Below, piece after piece: positions 46,559 through 57,478 of a DNA stretch of 64,000 nt (position 1 is its first letter; each line of letters opens with the position of its first letter). The translations under genes and the position numbers were made by a program. The notes below the pieces were generated by a model. The model was not told the DNA's origin, searched no databases, and saw only the letters and a program-made list of their open reading frames with translations. The stretch is from Ranitomeya imitator (Eukaryota), in the NCBI RefSeq assembly GCF_032444005.1, contig NC_091290.1, forward strand, positions 12,586,001 to 12,650,000. The letters run 5' to 3'.

Positions 46559-49500
46559 CTGGAGAATAAAAATATATACGTTACGTTGAGGACGATCAGA
46601 AAGATGCTTAGCTAAGGTTTCTAATGAGAAACAGCGCCACCCTTGTGCAGAGGTTGTATGTGGTAATGCAGCTTAGCTCGTTTTATGTGATTGCAATACC
46701 ATTCAAGACCCATCCATAAGGGTGGCGCTGTTTCAGGAAAAAAAAAAAAAGAACTGACGGTAATAAAGGAGCATTTTCTATTCTAATCCACCCTATTAAC
46801 CTAAGCAAGGAGTAGCTCCGACCACCGGATGGAGCCGTGCAGGTTGTTCCTGCTACTCACCCTCTCATGAAGGCAGCGGCTAGAAGTAATATCACAAATA
46901 TGAAGGCGATGATGCACCCGATGGCGATTTTCTTCCAGGCTGTAAATAACAAGAAGCAGAAGGGTGAGGAAGCGTCATCAATTACGCGGAAATGCAGAAT
47001 TCTGCAGGTTTCCAATTCTCAGGGAGCAATGCATTGTGGGACTCTTGAGAACAGGGCTCTGTTCACATTGCATTGGATCCTTCCATTGGAGGTATATGAA
47101 GCGATCACTTTCTTGAACGAAAGTATGTGACCTGCACCACTTTATAGGCATACGATGGCATATGTTGCCCATAGGCTCCCGTTTTACACAGGGGCAATCT
47201 GTCAGCAACGTTTTAAGCGGCAGTCAGGAAGAGTGATGCATTGGTCACTGTTTAACGATTAAAACGATATCTATATCGTCCCGATCCGTTGTGTCGTTGC
47301 AGAGAAATCAGTATTTTTATCGATATGCAAATCAGACTGCAAGTGCACAAGACGTTGATAATGCACTTGCAGTCTATGACTCCTCCTCAGTTCTCCCTGT
47401 CCAGCGTCGTTCTCATCTGCTCGATCGGCAGCTGTTGTAAATAATATTATCTACAGAAAACATCATCGGTCTCTGCAGCCAATCGAGCAGCAATGCGTTG
47501 GCCAACTGCAGAGAAGCTGTGGACTGCAAGTGCACATGAAACGCCCAGTGCACTTGGAGTCCATGACTCCTCCTCAGTTCTCCCTGTCCAGCGTCGTTCT
47601 CATCTGCTCGATCGGCAGCTGTTGTAAATAATATTATCTACAGAAAACATCATCGGTCTCTGCAGCCAATCAAGCAGCAATGCGTTGGCCAACTGCAGAG
47701 AAGCTGTGGACTGCAAGTGCACATGAAACGCCCAGTGCAATTGGAGTCCATGACTCCTCCTCAGTTCTCCCTGTCCAGCGTCGTTCTCATCTGCTCGATC
47801 GGCAGCTGTTGTAAATAATATTATCTACAGAAATCATCATCTGTCTCTGCAGCCAATCGAGCAGCAATGCGATGGCCAACTGCAGAGAAGCTGTAGACTG
47901 CAAGTGCACATGAAACGCCCAGTGCACTTGCAGTTCATGACTCCTCCCCAGTTCTCCCTGTCCAGCGTCGTTCTCATCTGCTTGATCGGCAGCTGTTGTA
48001 AATATTATTATCTACAGAAAACATCATCTGTCTCTGCAGCCAATCGAGCAGCAATGCGTTGGCCAACTGCAGGGAAGCTGTGCACTGCAAGTGCACATGA
48101 GACGCCCAGTGCACTTGCAGTCCATGACTCATCCTCAGTTCTCCCTGTCCAGCGTCGTTCTCATCTGCTCGATCGGCAGCTGTTGTAAATATTATTATCT
48201 ACAGAAAACATCATCTGTCTCTGCAGCCAATCGAGCAGCAATGCGATGGCCAACTGCAGAGAAGCTGTAGACTGCAAGTGCACATGAAACGCCCAGTGCA
48301 CTTGCAGTTCATGACTCCTCCCCAGTTCTCCCTGTCCAGCGTCGTTCTCATCTGCTCGATCGGCAGCTGTTGTAAATATTATTATCTACAGAAAACATCA
48401 TCTGTCTCTGCAGCCAATCGAGCAGCAATGCGTTGGCCAACTGCAGGGAAGCTGTGGACTGCAAGTGCACATGAAACGCCCAGTGCACTTGCAGTCAAAT
48501 TTACATATGGATAAAAGTAAGGATTTCTCTGCAATAAAACAACCGATCGGGACGATATAGGCATCATTTTAATTGTCGAACAGAGACCAATTCATCCCTA
48601 CCTTCCGTTGATGCTTCAAATACTTTATTGATACAAATAGAGAAAAGAAAAATAAAATAGATACAAATCGGTACAAAAACACCAACGTAAAATAATGAAA
48701 AAAAATAAAACTTTGAAGCTGATGTACTTGGCTGAATTATGGCGCTGGGCAGGTGGCATAGATTTAGTGCCAAGTTTAGTCCTAGATATACGGCCACACA
48801 CTTGGTGTAATGTTTAATGTGGAATTATAATAACATAAATATATAAAATCACAACAAATAATAACAGGAACTTACTCCGGTTATCTTTTATTACGAGGAC
48901 ATCAGACACTGTAAGACAACAAAATGCATTACATGATGTTCCTTGCACAGGCTGCAAAAACGTACTAAGTCCATGTTCACACGATGCGTTCACGGTTTAC
49001 TATACATTTCTGAAATTGATGCAAAAACTATTAATTTTTTTACAGCAATTTTACAAAATTGCATACAAAGCCTTATTCACATGATACTTATTTTTGTTTT
49101 ACGAGATTCTTTAGCCTGCGTTCTCACGTTGTGATCTAAAATCACATTCACACATTTTATTTTTTTTACCATTTTTTTTTTATCTGCAGCATAGCCAATT
49201 CTTTTATCATTTTTACTGAAGTTTTTCTCTATTGAGATCAAAGTGAGATAGTAAAAAAGGATCAAAATATGCATCTGCAGTTTTCTTGTCATATGCAAAA
49301 AATGTTTAAAAACCTTATGTGTGAATGAGGCATAAACAATGCAGGACAAAAATAGTGCACCCAAGAAATGCATCATGTGAACAGACCTCTAAAAGGGTAT
49401 AAATTAGCCCTAGATTGCGGGATCAGTATTACAGAACCATAACATGAGAATGATGGCTAAATACACATACATCATTTTTGGGGGGCCAGACTGAATCCTT

Positions 49501-52500
49501 AAAAGGGTAAATGGGTTTAGAAAATCTGTTTTCATATATTATGAATGGTAGATCCTGTGTTATCAGCTGTATATAGAGGTGTTATCAGTCATTGTACAGG
49601 AGGAGGAGGTGAGCTGTGACATCACCTATTGTGAATGGTGGATCCTGTGTTATCTACAGTATATAGAGGTGTTATCAGTCATTGTACAGGAGGAGGTGAG
49701 CTGTGACATCACCTATTGTGAATAGTGGATCCTGTGTTATCTACAGTATATAGAGGTGTTATCAGTCATTGTACATGAGGAGAAGGTGAGCTGTGACATC
49801 ACCTATTGTGAATGGTGGATCCTGTGTTATCTACTGTATATAGAGGTGTTATCACTCATTGTACAGGGGGAGGAGGTGAGGTGTGACATCACCTATTGTG
49901 AATGGTGGATCCTGTGTTATCTACTGTATATAGAGGAGTTATCAGTCATTGTACAGGAGGAGGAGGTGAGCTGTGATATCACCTATTGTGAATGGTGGAT
50001 CCTGTGTTATCTATTGTATATAGAGGTGTTATCACTCATTGTACAGGGGGAGGAGGTGAGCTGTGACATCACCTATTGTGAATGGTGGATCCTGTGTTAT
50101 CTATTATATATAGAGGTGTTATCAGTCATTGTACAGGAGCAGGAGGTGAGCTGTGACATCACCTATTGTGAATGGTGGATCCTGTATTATCTACTGTATA
50201 TAGAGGTGTTATCAGTCATTGTACAGGAGGAGGAGGAGGTGAGCTGTGACATCACCTATTGTGAATAGTGGATCCTGTGTTATCTATATATATGATAGGC
50301 ATTATCAGGTTATTTCCCAATGATAATTCTTGTACTTATTGATTGTCTGGTGAATACTTACAGGCCGGATTATAGCAGAAGGCTGAACCGTAACTTAACG
50401 TATCATCACAGGAATTCTGTTCAAAAATCTTGCCGCTCACCTTTCCCACTCCCCAATTATACCAGGCAAGACTGATGGAAGAAAAAGTACCGACATGGTC
50501 ACACATCGCACATCGCACGGTGTTACTATATGACACATATAACATTATGCAGGATTAGAGACACATGGCAGCTTTCTAAAAAAAAAAAAAAAGACAAAAC
50601 CACAGTGCCCCAGCTGTCTGCAGGTTGTGTGCGGTACTGCAGCTATGCTCCATTCACTTCAATGGAGACCAGACACAAACTGTGGATCGAGGTGGTGCTG
50701 TTTGTGGACGAGGGCAGCCAAGTTTTTTCCCTAATTCAAGCAAACGTGTTGCTTTTGAAAAGAATGGTTGAAAAGTTACGGCAACAGCAAAAGTTTGTTG
50801 CATTTTTAGAATAAATCCGTTTTATTAAGACATTTGGAGAGAAGATGCCAGAGTTACGTTTTTGTTGACAACAAGAAGTCCGGCCATATCAGTTCTTAGG
50901 CTCACGGCTGTGACTTGTTACTGTACATCTATCTGAGATACATCCTGAGGGTCTCAGTAGTTCTAGGAGTCATGAACCAGGAGGATCAGGATGAACAGCA
51001 CAAAATACCTCCCATTTGCACTCAATGGATCACATCTTACCTACTGTTTGCCATGAGACCTTTATTCTCCTCCATCTCCTCTTTGGTGGCTATGGTGAGT
51101 CCGCTGCCTGTGCAGGTTTTGCTGGCGTTTTCATAGGATGGGACAAGACCGGTAGGTATAGGAAGTATCTGAATCATCCCTGAATGTATGGAAAGGACCA
51201 AATTTCATCATTACGTCATACATGAACTGATTCGCTGTGCTCATACTGGTCTGCCGTGCTCATACTGGTCCGCTGTGCTCATACTGGTCTGCTGTGCTCA
51301 TACTGGTCTGCTGTGCTCAAACTGGTCCACTGCAATCAAACTGGTCTGCTGCAATCAAACTGGTCCGCTGTGCTGGTCGGCTGCACTCCAATTAGCCTGC
51401 TGTGCTCAAACTGGCCTGCTGCGCTCAAAATAGTCTGCTGTACTTAAACTGGTTTACTGCACTCAAACTGGTCCGCTGTGCTCATACTGGTTTGCTGTGC
51501 TCATACTCGTCCGCTGCACTCAAACTGGACCGCTGTGCTTAAACTGGTTTACTGCGCTCAAACTGGTCTGCTGTGCTCATACTAGTCTGCTGTGCTCATA
51601 CTGGTCTGCTGTGCTTAAACTGGTTTACTGCGCTCATATTGGTCTGCTGCGCTCATACTGACCTGCTGTGCTCATACTGGTCTGCTGTGCTTAAACTAGT
51701 TTACTGCACTCATACTGGTCTGCTGTGCTCATACTGGTCTGCTGTGCTTAAACTAGTTTACTGCGCTCATACTGACCTGCTGTGCTCATACTGGTCTGCT
51801 GTGCTTAAACTAGTTTACTGCGCTCATACTGACCTGCTGTGCTCATACTGGTCTGCTGTGCTTAAACTAGTTTACTACGCTCATACTGGTCTGCTGTGCT
51901 CATACTGGTCTGCTGTGCTCATACTGGTCTGCTGCGCTCATACTGGTCTGCTGTGCTTAAACTGGTTTACTGCACTCACATACTGACCTGCTGCGCTCAT
52001 ACTGGTCTGCTGCAGTCATACTGACCTGCTGTGCTCAACTGTTGAACTTGCCTGCATCTTACTGATCCCGATACATAAATAGAAAGTCTCGTGTACGATA
52101 TCAGCAGCACCAGGAAAGCGGACAGGTTGTCTGAGAAGATAATAGTTTTGCAGATATCTCCGTGGATGGACTCACCTGAGGAGCTATTGACACAGAATGT
52201 GGATCTGATGTTCGGACAGTCTCTGATCAGAACACCAACGTTATAATCAGCACACCCTTTAAATGGCGTCAGACGGAGCATGACAAGTCTCTTCTCCTGT
52301 GTCCAGCCCCACCTGGTTAGAATAAAAAAAAAGAAAAAAGAAAGTTAAATATCAGCTTTACTATATATTCACCCTGAAACAAAGCCTCCCACCTCTCATT
52401 GTTGCAAACGATAGAGACTTAGTGGTCCTCCGTCTCTAATAAGAGTGTCTTTTTAATCCAAAAAGTTGGATAGGACCTCCAGGGTCCCTGTGTCCGACCC

Positions 52501-55500
52501 CCTGCTCAATGCAGGACTCACTAAACCATCTGACAGGTGTCTGTCCGGCCTCTGTGTGAAGACTTCCATTGAAGGAGAACTCACCACCTCTCGAGGCCGC
52601 CTGTTCCACTCATTGATCACAGCCATGGTCATAAATATATTACAGGCTTTCCCATATTGTCGGCCATACTTACTTGCAGAGCTCGTAGCCCTTTGTAAAC
52701 GCAAAAGTGATATTCTCCAATGTCGCCAGTCTGCTGTAGTGCGCGGCACAGGCCACTTTGGCGCCATCATAATTAACTGAGATATTATTTGGCATGAACA
52801 CTCCGGAAATTACTGGTAGGAAAAAAAAAAAAAAAAATATTTACAGAATTGTTTTTTTTTTAAAATAGATGTTAATGAAAGGGTTAACAATGCAGGGGTT
52901 GAGTTAAATTTGCCTGCAGTGCCTCTGCAGGAGAAACAAAGCATTACAAGTTCCCATTGAAGTCTATGGACTCCCTGTGCAATGCGTGGACGAAACTGAA
53001 AGAAAGGAAGGTCCATGAGCGCAAGATTTATTACATTGATGGAGAGATGCTGAAATGCATATGTTAGTGTAGCGCCACACTTGGCTGTGTTTGGTATTGC
53101 AGTCTGATCTATAATGCCTGATCCAATCTATGGGCAGAAATGGAGCCGATTTATGGGGGACGACCGGCTTCCAGGACCCTGGGAATTGTACTGGCTGTCT
53201 TTTCTGTGCCGTACTCAACATTTAATCACCTCTGTGACCCCTTCGTTCTCAGGATCGTAGGGGGTTCTCTGATGTTGGACCGCCACTGATTGTAAAATGA
53301 TGGCCACTCCTAGCAATATGCTATCGCTTTATAAGATGGAAATATAAATGTTAACTACTTCTTGAAGTGTGACGAGCGTGTATGTTGGGAGTGGGAGTAT
53401 ACAGCGAGCTCAGGAGGGAAGCATACACCATTCACGGTCCATACCGGCTGTATTATACAGCCAGCACCTGCCTCTAACAGCAGCAACCGGAGCTAGCTCT
53501 GATTGCTGCTGTGTAACCACAGAGCAGAGCAATCGCGCCATGTAATTGTTACAGGGCCCATAGCATGGTCATTTCCTCCACAGGAGATTCTCACAAAATT
53601 AGAAAATCATTAAAACGTTAAATGTATTTCAGTTCTTCAATACAAAAAGTGAAACTCCTACATTATATAGCGTCATTACACACAGAGTGATCTACTTCAA
53701 GTGTTTATTTCTGTTAATGTTGAGGATTATGGCTTACAGTCAATGAAAACCCAAATGTCATTATCTCCGTAAATTAGAATAATTAACAAAAACCACCTGC
53801 AAATGCTTCCTAAGCGTTTATAAAGGTCCCTTAGTCTGTTTCAGTAGCTCCACAATCATGGGGAAGACTGCTGACCTGACAGATAGCCAGAAGGCGTCAT
53901 TGACACACATGGAATAGATCACCCTGTTTGTAACATATAATACTACTATAATATATGAGTTTCACTTTTTGTATTGAAGAACTGAAATTAAATTAATGTT
54001 ATCTTGATATTCTAATTTTGTGAGAAGCACCTGTATATACTGCAACACAGTGATATCACAGTATAGAGAATAACTAATCAAAAACAACTTCAGGTCCCAT
54101 AAGGGAACTTAAAACTGAATTAGGTTTGGGGCCTTTTTATCCCGGGGGTGGGGGAGGTCTGTGATGACCCGTGACGGGTCCCCGTTTTTGCATTTTCTAC
54201 AAAGTCTCCATTGCTTTAGGTACGGAGTATATAAACACAGAGATGCAAGGTTATTAGACAGGAACATAATATATAGACGAGAGGTAATAAGTGTATAAAA
54301 CACAGGAGCACGCCTTTAAGAAGTTACCCTTAAATGGATTGTAGCTGGCTGATGCGGAGTGGGGTTGCAGTATTGTTAGTGAGGTGGAGAAGGCGGGTTT
54401 ATTTTGTAAACCATTCTGTATATTGCAAATGCCCTTGGCTCTAATGCAAAATCTATAAAGGGGGCCGCACCCGCCATGTGCCACTTACAGCACTGGATTT
54501 TTTTATGTGCTGACATACCACTTGGACCCCAGGAAGAACCAATTATAAGGGGGCCACTAACACCCCCAAAGCAGGTAGAAATGTGCATTATGAGGAGCTA
54601 CTGGACTGCAAAGGGGCCCATGTATTGTTTTTGTACAGGGGCCTCTTCTATCCGTGTCAGCCAGTGTGTAGAGGGGCTTTTAGGCCCCCTCTGCTTGAAT
54701 TGTTAACTCTTCCCTCAATATAGCATAGCCCCCCCGGTTAAAGCCACAGTTGCCAATGTATGGTAGAAGAAAGCACAAATGTGCTAGTCAGAAGGCTACG
54801 GTAGAAGAAAGCACAGATGTGCTAGTCAGAAGGCTACGGTAGAAGAAAGCACAAATGTGCTGGTCAGAGGGCTACGGTAGAAGAAAGCACAGATGTGCCA
54901 GTCAGAGGGCTACGGTAGAAGAAAGCACAGATGTGCCAGTCAGAGGGCTACGGTAGAAGAAAGCACAAATGTGCTAGTCAGAAGGCTACGGTAGAAGAAA
55001 GCACAGATGTGCCAGTCAGAGGGCTACGGTAGAAGAAAGCACAGATGTGCCAGTCAGAGGGCTACGGTAGAAGAAAGCACAGATGTGCCAGTCAGAGGGC
55101 TACGGTAGAAGAAAGCACAGATCTGCCAGTCAGAGGGCTACGGTAGAAGAAAGCACAGATCTGCCAGTCAGAGGGCTACGGTAGAAGAAAGCACAGATCT
55201 GCCAGTCAGAGGGCTACGGTAGAAGAAAGCACAAATGTGCCAGTCAGAGGGCTACGGTAGAAGAAAGCACAAATGTGCCAGTCAGAGGGCTACGGTAGAA
55301 GAAAGCACAGATGTGCCAGTCAGAGGGCTACGGTAGAAGAAAGCACAGATCTGCCAGTCAGAGGGCTACGGTAGAAGAAAGCACAGATGTGCCAGTCAGA
55401 GGGCTACGGTAGAAGAAAGCACAGATCTGCCAGTCAGAGGGCTACGGTAGAAGAAAGCACAGATCTGCCAGTCAGAGGGCTACGGTAGAAGAAAGCACAA

Positions 55501-56194
55501 ATGTGCCAGTCAGAGGGCTACGGTAGAAGAAAGCACAGATCTGCCGGTCAGAGGGCTACGGTAGAAGAAAGCACAAATGTGTTGGTCAGAGGGCTACGGT
55601 AGAAGAAAGCACAGATGTGCCGGTCAGAGGGCTACGGTAGAAGAAAGCACAAATGTGTTGGTCAGAGGGCTACGGTAGAAGAAAGCACAGATCTGCCAGT
55701 CAGAGGGCTACGGTAGAAGAAAGCACAGATGTGCCGGTCAGAGGGCTACGGTAGAAGAAAGCACAAATGTGTTGGTCAGAGGGCTACGGTAGAAGAAAGC
55801 ACAGATGTGCCAGTCAGAGGGCTATGGTAGAAGAAAGCACAAATGTGCTAGTCAGAGGGCTACGGTAGAAGAAAGCACAGATGTGCAAGTCAGAGGGCTA
55901 CGGTAGAAGAAAGCACAGATGTGCCAGTCAGAGGGCTACGGTAGAAGAAAGCACAGATGTGCTGGTCAGAGGGCTACGGTAGAAGAAAGCACAAATGTGC
56001 CAGTCAGAGGGCTACGGTAGAAGAAAGCACAGATGTGCCAGTCAGAGGGCTACGGTAGAAGAAAGCACAGAAGTGCCAGACAGAGGGCTAAGGCCAAGAC
56101 CTGGTGGGATCGGCTCACCTTGTATGGGGTCTGCAGAAGATGAGATTCCGATGACCGAGATGAGAACGCAGAGGTGTAAGGTTTGGTGGATCAT
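46321..56194 (-). CDS. Tandem Link-module type I membrane receptor, CD44/LYVE1 family-like; 8 coding exons, 316 aa
   Basis: join(complement) 56194-56119, 52812-52674, 52312-52176, 51179-51041, 50471-50362, 48908-48876, 46939-46861, 46558-46321 = 951 nt. All introns are GT-AG, phases 1,2,1,2,1,1,2, with no internal stop. Protein: MIHQTLHLCVLISVIGISSSADPIQVISGVFMPNNISVNYDGAKVACAAHYSRLATLENITFAFTKGYELCKWGWTQEKRLVMLRLTPFKGCADYNVGVLIRDCPNIRSTFCVNSSSGMIQILPIPTGLVPSYENASKTCTGSGLTIATKEEMEENKGLMANSSLAWYNWGVGKVSGKIFEQNSCDDTLSYGSAFCYNPALSDVLVIKDNRTWKKIAIGCIIAFIFVILLLAAAFMRGNKCICCMGEQRSHAPETTQVPVPTWNTTSIYRRISHASKDIVYDNMVNPAKRLPVIQPDLSFYKTHYSNMGFDTTGEE. Confidence 0.88.
46861..46939 (-). CDS. Link receptor exon 7 (transmembrane)
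   Basis: Acceptor cttcttgttatttacAG; 79 nt; WKKIAIGCIIAFIFVILLLAAAFMR; donor GTGAGT; phase 1-2. Confidence 0.9.
47263..48568. mobile_element. TTAA-flanked Kolobok/T2-like element containing about 6 x 187-bp hairpin repeats (Link-gene intron 6)
   Basis: TTAA at 47259-47262 and 48569-48572; inverted arms ctatatcgtcccgatc / gatcgggacgatatag and tgcagagaaatc / gatttctctgca; 187-bp period 47336-48495. Confidence 0.75.
48876..48908 (-). CDS. Link receptor exon 6 (33-nt stalk micro-exon)
   Basis: Acceptor ttttgttgtcttacAG; donor GTAAGT; encodes (L)SDVLVIKDNR(T); phase 1-1. Confidence 0.75.
49540..50290. repeat. 90-bp tandem satellite, about 8 copies (intron 5)
   Basis: Unit atcctgtgttatctactgtatatagaggtgttatcagtcattgtacaggaggaggaggtgagctgtgacatcacctattgtgaatggtgg. 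Confidence 0.93.
50362..50471 (-). CDS. Link receptor exon 5 (degenerate Link module 2, C-half)
   Basis: Acceptor tttttcttccatcAG; 110 nt; LAWYNWG...NSC...AFCYNPA; donor GTAAGT, phase 1. Confidence 0.85.
51041..51179 (-). CDS. Link receptor exon 4 (degenerate Link module 2, N-half)
   Basis: Acceptor cctttccatacattcAG; 139 nt, the same length and phases as exon 2; YENASKTCTGSGLTIATKEEME, resembling LYVE1 FTEAKEACRLLGLSLAGKDQVE; donor GTAAGA. Confidence 0.85.
51233..52040. repeat. 19-bp-type minisatellite (intron 3, between the Link modules)
   Basis: Unit actggtctgctgtgctcat with aaactggtttactgc variants. Confidence 0.9.
52176..52312 (-). CDS. Link receptor exon 3 (Link module 1, C-half)
   Basis: Acceptor tttattctaaccAG; 137 nt; WGW...KGC...VGVL...TFCVNSS, resembling LYVE1 YGW...PKC...VGVL...AYCYNSS; donor GTGAGT. 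Confidence 0.9.
52674..52812 (-). CDS. Link receptor exon 2 (Link module 1, N-half)
   Basis: Long T tract then cctaccAG acceptor; 139 nt; SGVF...AKVAC...LAT...GYELC, resembling CD44 GVF...AADLC...LPT...GFETC; donor GTAAGT, phase 2. Confidence 0.9.
53580..54034. mobile_element. Internally deleted Tc1-like element
   Basis: TIR caggagattctcacaaaattagaaaatc / gatattctaattttgtgagaagcacctg. Confidence 0.8.
54762..56090. repeat. 38-bp minisatellite, about 35 copies (intron 1, ending about 30 nt from the exon 1 donor)
   Basis: Unit ggtagaagaaagcacagatgtgccagtcagagggctac. Confidence 0.95.
56119..56194 (-). CDS. Link receptor coding exon 1 (signal peptide)
   Basis: ATG at 56194 in context gtcagcATGA; encodes MIHQTLHLCVLISVIGISSSADPIQ plus 1 nt; donor GTGAGC; phase 1 joins exon 2. 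Confidence 0.8.
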
Positions 56195-57478
56195 GCTGAC
56201 GGCCTCCGCTCCTAGTCCCGGAGATCTGCTGTCTGGAGGGATCGTGCTTCTTCTGATACTACAGGGAGGATCTGGAGCCAAACTTGTGTGACACAGACCG
56301 GCCCACACCCCTGGGGCAGAACACGGGGCTGTGACGTGAGAACGCACCCGCAGCTGTGTCATCAGCGTCATTCTGTACCTAAGAAGTCACCATGTGGGAT
56401 CTGTGACTGCAGCCATCTGAGATCCTATCACTGGATTATACCCTAAACCCTTATACAGCAGCCAGACCTGGAGATCAGTTTGAAGGGGTTGTCCCATTTA
56501 GAAAACCCCCTTAAATACACACTAGTCTGACCCTAACTTCTCGAACCTCATCCATTGGACCGAGTAGTTACAAAGAATGTCTCTCACTCTGGAGGAGACA
56601 ACCTGCTGATGTGAATGGGCACTGTGCAATGCCTCATTTCTCCAGCGGGAGCGCTGTAGGGAAATCGAACACTTGCATACTGATGAATTGTTCCAAAAAA
56701 TGGTGCATGTCTCTTTAAAATGAGAAAAAAATGTAGTCTATTGCAAAAAAGAGCCACACATCCCTTCCCAGAATATCCTATCCCCAGTGATTTCAGAAAC
56801 CCCAAGATCACGTCCCTCTACGGCGCTCAGACTCTAATGCTGCCACCCGAATATTCACTCTCTCCCAATGAATATGGGAGAAAGCTCTGGGTATCGATGG
56901 ATTATTTAACACTTGTCAGGTACATCCTAAGACATTTGATTCATCAGCCGTAAAGTATTTAAGGCTCAGCCATGTTGTACCGGGTCCTTGTATGAAGCAT
57001 TCCTCCTGACGCACGCGGTGGTTAGACACCTGGGCCGAGGTCACATTCTGTACCGTGTCCCACCAACACCCAGATTCGGTGCGGCCCTGGAGGACGGACT
57101 TCCATCAGACGTCTGGAATCTGGTGGAACAAGTTCTGCAGTTTCTAGATCTAGCCTCCAGCGACATCATCACGTAAAGCCGTGCTCTTCCATCTGCGGCT
57201 GTTCAGTTACTGCAAACTACAACTCCCAGCATTTTTACAGTAGACAAGTTTCCATCACATCTTGGCGGATTCTGGCGTCTCATGATGAGAATAGTCATCA
57301 TCAGCTTTGTTCCTGCCATGATGGAAATGTAACAACACCCAATCATCCGTGGGATTTGTACTACTCTACCTTGGTCCCCTAAACCATTATAGGGCAATGT
57401 TAAATCCCCCCCGAAAAAAAACAACAACAATCCTTCATAAATTTTATTGAATTCCTGCCTCCTTTGTTAATTACCAGG

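Follow-up and report, generated by a model that had tools for sequence, protein, structure and literature searches.

To our knowledge, each of the known membrane receptors of the Link superfamily (CD44, LYVE-1, and stabilin-2) carries a single Link module, and tandem pairs of Link modules have been described only in secreted proteins of the matrix, namely, lecticans and HAPLNs. Here, we analyze a gene found in a 64,000-nucleotide stretch of the genome of the frog Ranitomeya imitator (RefSeq assembly GCF_032444005.1, contig NC_091290.1, positions 12,586,001 to 12,650,000 of the forward strand; this whole stretch is referred to below as the window, and all coordinates are those of the window). 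The gene encodes a real, expressed, amphibian-wide membrane receptor that is related to LYVE-1 and CD44 and has two Link modules. It represents a third architecture, in which a tandem pair of Link modules is anchored right at the membrane, with no stalk in between, and has been kept across frogs, salamanders, and caecilians. The explanation that we favor as a whole, and regard as fairly probable, is that the second module (module 2) would have arisen as a copy of an exon pair, degenerated, become stapled to the first one (module 1) by a disulfide between Cys104 and Cys185, and come to serve as a rigid second lobe.

Several described proteins resemble the product of this gene. TSG-6 (type A) has a minimal Link module without extensions, as does module 2 of the frog protein, and binds hyaluronan through Lys11, Tyr12, Tyr59, Phe70, and Tyr78. 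However, TSG-6 is a secreted protein whose single Link module precedes a CUB domain and retains both disulfides, whereas the frog module 2 lacks the second of the canonical Link cysteines (C1 to C4 in module 1, C1' to C4' in module 2) and the beta5 segment. The G1 regions of lecticans and HAPLNs (aggrecan, versican, and link protein; type C) share with the frog protein the presence of two contiguous Link modules in one chain, but they are secreted into the matrix, have an Ig domain ahead of the pair, and retain four cysteines in both modules. CD44 is also a type I receptor with a Link module; however, it combines one extended Link domain with a mucin stalk that is variably spliced, and the tails of the two proteins are unrelated.

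LYVE-1 is likewise a type I membrane protein with an N-terminal Link module, in which C2 and C3 are separated by 20 residues, as in the frog protein. Its only Link module is a type B domain, in which N- and C-terminal extensions are locked by a third disulfide, Cys36-Cys139 (PMC5122770), and it is followed by a long O-glycosylated stalk. LYVE-1 forms a functionally essential disulfide-linked homodimer via one unpaired ectodomain cysteine that is absent in amphibian LYVE-1 (PMC5122770); in the amniote proteins, this cysteine is located in the stalk. In contrast, the frog protein has neither the extension disulfide nor the stalk, adds a degenerate second Link module, and has a different tail. 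Its mature form contains no cysteine ahead of C1, and module 2 directly follows module 1. The frog protein belongs to the superfamily through module 1 and lacks the features that define type B and type C domains; we regard it as a receptor that is related to LYVE-1 and CD44 but has a new architecture. A full-text literature search returned no paper describing an amphibian family of tandem-Link receptors, and in the databases its members are named “uncharacterized,” “LYVE1-like,” “CD44 antigen,” or “aggrecan core protein-like.” As automatic pipelines have named some of them LYVE-1 or CD44, the family bears on the reading of amphibian lymphatic and immune markers.

Gene structure and transcription

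The gene consists of eight exons on the minus strand (951 nucleotides [nt] in total) and encodes a protein of 316 amino acids (aa), P0025, which is annotated as “unnamed protein product / Link domain-containing protein.” The coordinates of exons 2 to 5 were obtained by translating the three minus-strand frames of positions 49800-53400. A search of 1.84 billion representative proteins with 45 residues of exon 3 retrieved frog proteins of roughly 300 to 325 aa, and P0025 was found by a word search with the best exon 3 match and a cluster look-up. It matches the exon translations of the window exactly except at junction codons 201 and 212, which were read by eye, and was used as the full-length reference in all full-length analyses, while the exons were searched singly. 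The exons are as follows.

Exon 1, coding part: 56194-56119, minus strand; start codon and signal peptide (MIHQTLHLCVLISVIGISSSA...), ends in phase 1
Exon 2: 52812-52674, minus strand; 139 nt, phase 1-2; N-terminal half of Link module 1, with Cys47 (C1) and Cys71 (C2)
Exon 3: 52312-52176, minus strand; 137 nt, phase 2-1; C-terminal half of module 1, with Cys92 (C3), the extra Cys104 (codon 52218-52216), and Cys112 (C4)
Exon 4: 51179-51041, minus strand; 139 nt, phase 1-2; N-terminal half of Link module 2, with Cys140 (C1') and with Ser163 (codon 51045-51043) at the C2 position
Exon 5: 50471-50362, minus strand; 110 nt, phase 2-1; shortened C-terminal half of module 2, with Cys185 (codon 50410-50408; canonical C3, orphaned) and Cys196 (C4')
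Exon 6: 48908-48876, minus strand; 33 nt, phase 1-1; juxtamembrane segment (L)SDVLVIKDNR, with splice sites present
Exon 7: 46939-46861, minus strand; 79 nt; transmembrane helix (KKIAIGCIIAFIFVILLLAAAFMR)
Exon 8: 46558-46321, minus strand; cytoplasmic tail with a Cys cluster, conserved YxN[ML] motifs, and the stop codon

For exons 2 to 5, these lengths and phases agree with a first-pass annotation of the window, made from the sequence alone, which had given 139 nt and phase 1-2 for exons 2 and 4 and phase 2-1 for exons 3 and 5. Exons 1, 6, and 8 match P0025 exactly at residues 1-25, 202-211, and 239-316, respectively. Exon 1, with its hydrophobic N terminus, encodes the signal peptide only and is followed by a GTGAGC donor; module 1 begins at residue 26, with no Ig domain ahead of it. 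In exons 2 to 5, the acceptors are AG preceded by a polypyrimidine tract, and the donors are GTAAGT, GTGAGT, or GTAAGA. Kyte-Doolittle hydropathy peaks at 3.1 over residues 216-234, the transmembrane helix encoded by exon 7. The linker between module 2 and this helix comprises about 13 residues (201-213; LSDVLVIKDNRTW) and contains no Ser/Thr-rich mucin stalk.

Splicing of the Link exons is documented by RNA contigs, which were mapped over positions 50300-52900. Two studies of the same organism each provided a long contig (X5 record 14, 1657 nt, and X6 record 19, 1402 nt) that consists of exactly the four exon blocks and skips the three predicted introns, whose ends read CT..AC on the plus strand and, accordingly, GT..AG on the gene strand. 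The joints are at 50471/51041, 51178/52175, and 52310/52672, and the one between exons 3 and 4 (51178/52175) was seen in four runs. The same joints are present in a third study (X1) and in a related species (X10), in which no listed difference affects a cysteine codon, nine more differences being unlisted. The contigs cover exon 2, and the loose contig end at 50362 continues into exon 6.

Identity of the two Link modules

Module 1 of P0025 matches the Pfam Xlink domain (PF00193) with 51.5 bits over residues 35-100, well above the gathering cut-off of 27, and exon 2 alone matches profile positions 10-46 with an E value of 5.7e-5. A module 1 profile built from 21 species had LYVE-1 as its best single PDB domain (59.7 bits), followed by CD44 (49 bits), TSG-6 (38 bits), and the two aggrecan modules (36 and 28 bits); LYVE-1 was also the best PDB match of exon 3 alone. 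All four Link cysteines of module 1 are invariant in the 24 sequences of the anuran alignment A1, which ranges from Bombina, Discoglossus, and Rhinophrynus to ranids, hylids, bufonids, and dendrobatids. Judged from its sequence, module 1 is a canonical Link module, closest to that of LYVE-1.

Module 2 is more divergent. Taken alone, module 2 of this species has no match to Pfam Xlink, and the E value of exon 4 alone is 0.19; the respective segments of Discoglossus and Bombina score 20.7 and 19.9 bits (E values of 5e-4 and 9e-4), below the cut-off of 27. Comparison of the module 1 and module 2 profiles gave a probability of 89% and an E value of 2.2e-6, over the N-terminal 39 columns only. The three best PDB matches of the module 2 profile are all Link proteins, namely TSG-6 (8.7e-4), LYVE-1 (7.7e-3), and aggrecan (9.8e-3). 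The AlphaFold2 model of module 2 alone, made with the family alignment, has a mean predicted local distance difference test score (pLDDT) of 84.5. In an exhaustive structural comparison of this model with 48,161 chains, the top matches were mouse and human LYVE-1 (Z scores of 10.7 and 10.6, root mean square deviation [rmsd] of 2.4 to 2.6 Å over 85 of 86 residues), along with aggrecan G1 (Z score of 10.6) and TSG-6 (9.7). The others, mostly C-type lectin-like domains, scored 7.7 or less, and the best Foldseek match was TSG-6, with a template modeling (TM) score of 0.71. Module 2 is thus predicted to have the Link fold, a compact variant related to that of C-type lectins with two helices and two antiparallel sheets, which agrees with its reading as a second Link module in the first-pass annotation. 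Because C2 is replaced by Ser163, with C1', C3', and C4' retained, it is a degenerate member of the Link superfamily.

The model of both modules together is compact (pLDDT of 83.4, predicted TM score [pTM] of 0.69). Foldseek matches the two modules, in order, to the pair of Link modules in aggrecan G1 (210 columns, E = 1.3e-4), but the orientation of the modules differs: in a comparison of the predicted model with the crystal structure 9dff, the rmsd was 17 to 18 Å and the TM score was 0.30 to 0.33. A lectican-like origin of the tandem was considered and rejected, given that module 1 is nearer to LYVE-1 and CD44 than to aggrecan, the Ig domain is missing, and the predicted packing is different.

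Origin of the second module and its spread in amphibians

In CD44 and LYVE1, the Link module is split by an intron just after C2, and the frog gene has such an intron in both modules. In hidden Markov model (HMM) alignments of both segment types, C71-K72-W-G-W75 in module 1 is placed opposite S163-S164-L-A-W167 in module 2, and the inner intron splits the codons of K72 and S164, each after its second base. The two introns occupy homologous positions and share one phase. In addition, both exon pairs are bounded by phase 1 introns, so that each pair constitutes a symmetric, duplicable cassette. The homologous intrusion of a phase 2 intron between outer phase 1 introns in both modules argues that module 2 is an exon-pair copy. 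We suggest that it arose as a copy of the whole pair before the divergence of frogs, salamanders, and caecilians. An exon-pair duplication had already been proposed in the first-pass annotation; the homologous codon and phase of the intron, the predicted Link fold, and the variable number of modules across the family (see below) all speak for it.

Raw similarity contributes little to this case. There is no similarity between the exon pairs at the DNA level, and the z-scores for protein similarity are low (2.5 for exon 2 versus exon 4 and 1.5 for exon 3 versus exon 5); hence, the argument for duplication rests on the profiles, the fold, and the intron position. The equal length of exons 2 and 4, which had been offered as a shared character, proved to be coincidental, as it is not conserved across frogs. 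The segment equivalent to exon 2 comprises 47 to 49 residues in full-length frog models, and the length of the one equivalent to exon 4 varies between 45 and 52 residues among the other frogs, apart from 73 in an annotated Nanorana model. Within the R. imitator exons 2 and 4, a one-residue offset before C1 is itself offset later in the exon.

Relatives of the R. imitator protein were also detected in the other two amphibian orders. Two caecilian members, from Geotrypetes (P0042, 535 aa) and Microcaecilia (P0044, 423 aa), were found with the family profile, and two salamander members, from Pleurodeles (P0045, 437 aa) and Ambystoma (P0046, 421 aa), with the Spea sequence as the query. They contain from two to about five modules, each of which is clearly of the module 1 or the module 2 type by its HMM score. 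The order of types is 1-1-2 in Microcaecilia and Pleurodeles, 1-2 in Ambystoma, and (partial 1)-1-2-1-2 in Geotrypetes, and all four proteins have the same transmembrane helix and YDNL tail. As both module types are present in salamanders and caecilians, the duplication is, on the sequence evidence, older than the amphibian divergence: module 2 predates the living amphibians (crown Lissamphibia), and the cassette kept duplicating afterwards. Outside amphibians, no relatives were found with the exon 3 query or in a word search with the family profile, searches whose limited reach does not show absence. The non-frog matches of exon 3 (P0002, P0004, P0014, and others) were discarded as spurious, being TPR or other repeat proteins.

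Two observations weigh against an internal copy. Module 1 is no nearer to module 2 in sequence than TSG-6 or LYVE-1 is, and the C-terminal halves of the two modules do not align, which leaves internal duplication unproven against capture from a paralogue. By capture, module 2 would have come as an exon pair from another Link gene through exon shuffling between phase 1 introns, the candidate donors being a TSG-6-like gene or another CD44/LYVE-1-like paralogue with the same intron layout. The module 2 profile scores at least as well with TSG-6 (22.5 bits) and LYVE-1 (19.4 bits) as with module 1 of its own family (9 to 15 bits), and both the restriction of the alignment to the N-terminal halves and the lack of DNA similarity between the exon pairs also speak for capture. 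However, all these profile scores are low and do not discriminate between the possible sources. Furthermore, the later module gains in caecilians and salamanders are clearly within-gene copies, either of a module 1-type unit or of a module 1 plus module 2 pair, and thus internal duplication of the cassette does occur at this locus. We therefore regard capture as unlikely and a copy made within the gene as the more probable origin of module 2.

Cysteines and disulfide pairing

The exon translations contain all the cysteine motifs listed in the first-pass annotation: VAC, ELC, KGC, and TFC plus the extra RDC in module 1, and KTC, NSC, and AFC in module 2, whose C2 position is occupied by Ser (MANS). 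The C-terminal half of module 2 is indeed shorter by 9 aa, exon 5 being 27 nt (9 codons) shorter than exon 3. In the alignment of module 2 with LYVE-1, an 11-residue gap covers the LYVE-1 segment NGVGVLIWKVP (beta5), which accounts for the shorter exon 5; between C3' and C4', module 2 has thus lost 9 residues relative to module 1 and 11 relative to LYVE-1. The NSC cysteine had been called spare. This holds in the sense that Cys185 is unpaired within its module, but it is not an additional cysteine: the module 2 profile aligns it with LYVE-1 Cys106, which makes it the canonical C3, orphaned by the replacement of C2 with Ser163. The proposed remodeling of the disulfides of module 2 is thereby supported. 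The extra cysteine of module 1, Cys104 (RDC), aligns with LYVE-1 Val118, two residues past Trp116.

The six canonical ectodomain cysteines are invariant in all 24 anurans of the alignment, and 22 of the 24 have exactly eight ectodomain cysteines. Twenty-three of the 24 have Cys104, and as many have Cys185; the single exception is in both cases the sequence of Spea bombifrons (P0034), which has Asp and Pro at these positions within a gap-free flanking alignment. Both cysteines are also found in three further frog sequences, from Xenopus, Mixophyes, and a transcriptome contig. The two cysteines that had been singled out as spare thus behave as a conserved, co-varying pair. An ectodomain with eight cysteines and the coupled loss of two of them are what a Cys104-Cys185 bond would predict, and such a bond probably exists. 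That it is formed within one chain we rate as just short of an even chance, given that coupled conservation alone cannot separate an intrachain bond from one formed in trans in a dimer.

Several observations count against such a bond. The joint loss in Spea is one event in one genome, and a search for a second spadefoot orthologue found none in the collection searched. In Mixophyes fleayi (P0041), the C2 position of module 1 is occupied by Asp, which leaves 7 ectodomain cysteines, so an orphan C3 is apparently tolerated there, and Pelobates fuscus (P0037) has 9 ectodomain cysteines. The extra cysteine of module 1 recurs in salamanders and in one module of a caecilian. Module 2 of the axolotl and that of one Geotrypetes module pair contain, in addition to C3', a GWC cysteine that brings their total to four; GWC is absent in frogs and in module 2 of Pleurodeles. 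In the axolotl and Geotrypetes modules, GWC presumably pairs with C3', and the extra cysteine of module 1 must then pair elsewhere; extra N-terminal cysteines that could serve as its partner are found in salamanders. Because the partner differs in this way, the frog arrangement looks like a lineage-specific re-pairing.

The same data bear on a bond between chains, which would produce a covalent homodimer with either Cys104-Cys185 bonds in trans or two like-with-like bonds, comparable to the Cys201-linked LYVE-1 homodimer, which sets a precedent for cysteine-linked dimerization in this class (PMC5122770). In that case, the tandem module would serve dimer-dependent avidity. A trans bond would leave an identical pattern of conservation and coupled loss, and the partner of the extra module 1 cysteine clearly differs in salamanders and caecilians. 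However, the even number of cysteines (8) and the compact model (pTM of 0.69) are most simply accommodated in one chain, and the dimerizing cysteine of LYVE-1 sits in a flexible stalk rather than in a folded module. Overall, an interchain bond seems improbable. Least probable is that Cys104 and Cys185 are independent free or unrelated cysteines, for example, redox-sensitive thiols or sites of bonds to other proteins, whose joint loss in Spea is a coincidence or a sequence error. For this reading, the double loss is confined to a single lineage, an orphan C3 is tolerated in module 1 of Mixophyes, and cysteine patterns vary across the wider family; against it, both positions are otherwise invariant in lineages ranging from Bombina and Discoglossus to dendrobatids, oxidized ectodomains rarely contain free cysteines, and the gap-free flanks in Spea make mis-splicing unlikely.

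With the intrachain Cys104-Cys185 bond as the preferred arrangement, the Spea, Mixophyes, and Pelobates fuscus variants offer useful material for testing disulfide connectivity. More generally, the family provides a natural experiment on the fate of a Link module once its groove-bracing C2-C3 disulfide has been dismantled and on the new partner of the orphaned cysteine.

Proposed receptor architecture and ligand groove

The protein is laid out as a putative type I receptor with a signal peptide, Link module 1, Link module 2, a linker of about 13 residues, a transmembrane helix, and a tail with tyrosine motifs. Module 1 would retain the C1-C4 and C2-C3 disulfides, and module 2 would retain the Link fold and the outer C1'-C4' disulfide while having lost C2 and the region of the beta5 strand. 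In frogs, the orphaned C3' (Cys185) would most likely be bonded to the extra Cys104 at the end of beta5 of module 1, stapling the two modules together and giving four disulfides from the eight ectodomain cysteines. Module 2 could then act as a rigid, covalently fixed second lobe that replaces the mucin stalk. The suggestion that it stands in place of such a stalk was made in the first-pass annotation and fits the gene model, with its short distance from module 2 to the membrane anchor.

The beta4/beta5 loop of LYVE-1, with its Lys105 and Lys108, is braced by the Cys85-Cys106 disulfide, which also makes hydrophobic contacts with hyaluronan, and the floor of the groove is formed by Tyr87 and Trp116 (PMC11926218). 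Cys104 and Cys185 appear to lie on the face that forms this groove in LYVE-1, in which case the staple would pack the two groove faces against each other; we infer such groove-to-groove packing from the aligned positions of the two cysteines. As the C2-C3 disulfide and the beta5 segment are gone, canonical hyaluronan binding by module 2 is unlikely, which makes the loss of binding suggested in the first-pass annotation plausible. Module 1 keeps some of the groove positions: in the alignment, LYVE-1 Tyr87 corresponds to the invariant Trp73 and Ile97 to the invariant Met83, and Arg78/Tyr79 of CD44 are conservatively replaced with Lys72/Trp73. Other positions are not kept. Those of Lys105 and Lys108 are variable, Trp116 is replaced with Arg102 (Arg or Lys across the family), and Arg41/Tyr42 of CD44 are replaced with Asn/Ile. 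With module 1 only partly LYVE-1-like, hyaluronan binding by the whole receptor should not be assumed.

The cytoplasmic tail shows its own pattern of conservation. Residues H304, Y305, and N307 are nearly invariant in the anuran alignment, and the motif near the C terminus as a whole is nearly invariant as H-Y-S/T-N-M in frogs and Y-D-N-L in salamanders and caecilians. In their sequence, the tail motifs resemble the pYxN (Grb2) and pYxxM (PI3K) docking sites. A juxtamembrane cysteine cluster (CICC, FICC, or FKCC), common to most members from the three amphibian orders, resembles a palmitoylation site. A bolder reading, which we consider doubtful, would make this protein a third, undescribed amphibian receptor of the CD44/LYVE-1 class, so far not seen in amniotes. 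Its two modules would be stapled groove to groove into a composite or non-hyaluronan site, its number of modules would have evolved by cassette duplication, and its CD28-like YxN[ML] tail would serve signaling and not merely adhesion.

Upstream start, neighboring genes, and intronic repeats

On the minus strand, the frame is open upstream of the signal-peptide Met (56371-56195), and the RefSeq model XP_069596429.1 (P0038, 375 aa) starts at the in-frame ATG at 56371, adding 59 residues before the signal peptide. Most full-length orthologue models begin at the MIHQTL-type Met, and Dendrobates tinctorius P0027 (383 aa) has a similar extension. One RNA contig reaches at least 382 nt 5' of exon 2, indicating that the upstream ATG (56371) is transcribed; it may be an upstream start that would bury the signal peptide.

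The downstream neighbor starts about 6 kb past the 3' end of the gene, near 39 to 40 kb on the minus strand, and encodes a product of 400 aa with no Pfam match. The upstream neighbor, just past the high end of the window (as seen in GCA_958301615.1), has the F-box, SMI1_KNR4, and DUF525 domains, the domain pattern of FBXO3. Human FBXO3 is located in 11p13, the band that also holds CD44; we regard this as a lead on the origin of the gene and not as a test of it.

The introns contain four tandem arrays: 35 copies of a 38-bp unit at 54762-56090, ending about 30 nt from exon 1; 43 copies of a 19-bp unit at 51234-52041, in intron 3; 8.6 copies of a 90-bp unit at 49537-50308, in intron 5; and 6 copies of a 187-bp unit, 96% identical, at 47362-48496, in intron 6. 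A stretch of about 170 nt in intron 2 (52475-52648) is covered by hundreds of different RNA contigs, with summed depths in the thousands, and this peak is present in all four RNA runs, including that of the related species. It is probably a high-copy dispersed repeat, resembling a short interspersed nuclear element (SINE) or a miniature inverted-repeat transposable element (MITE), that is transcribed within many genes.

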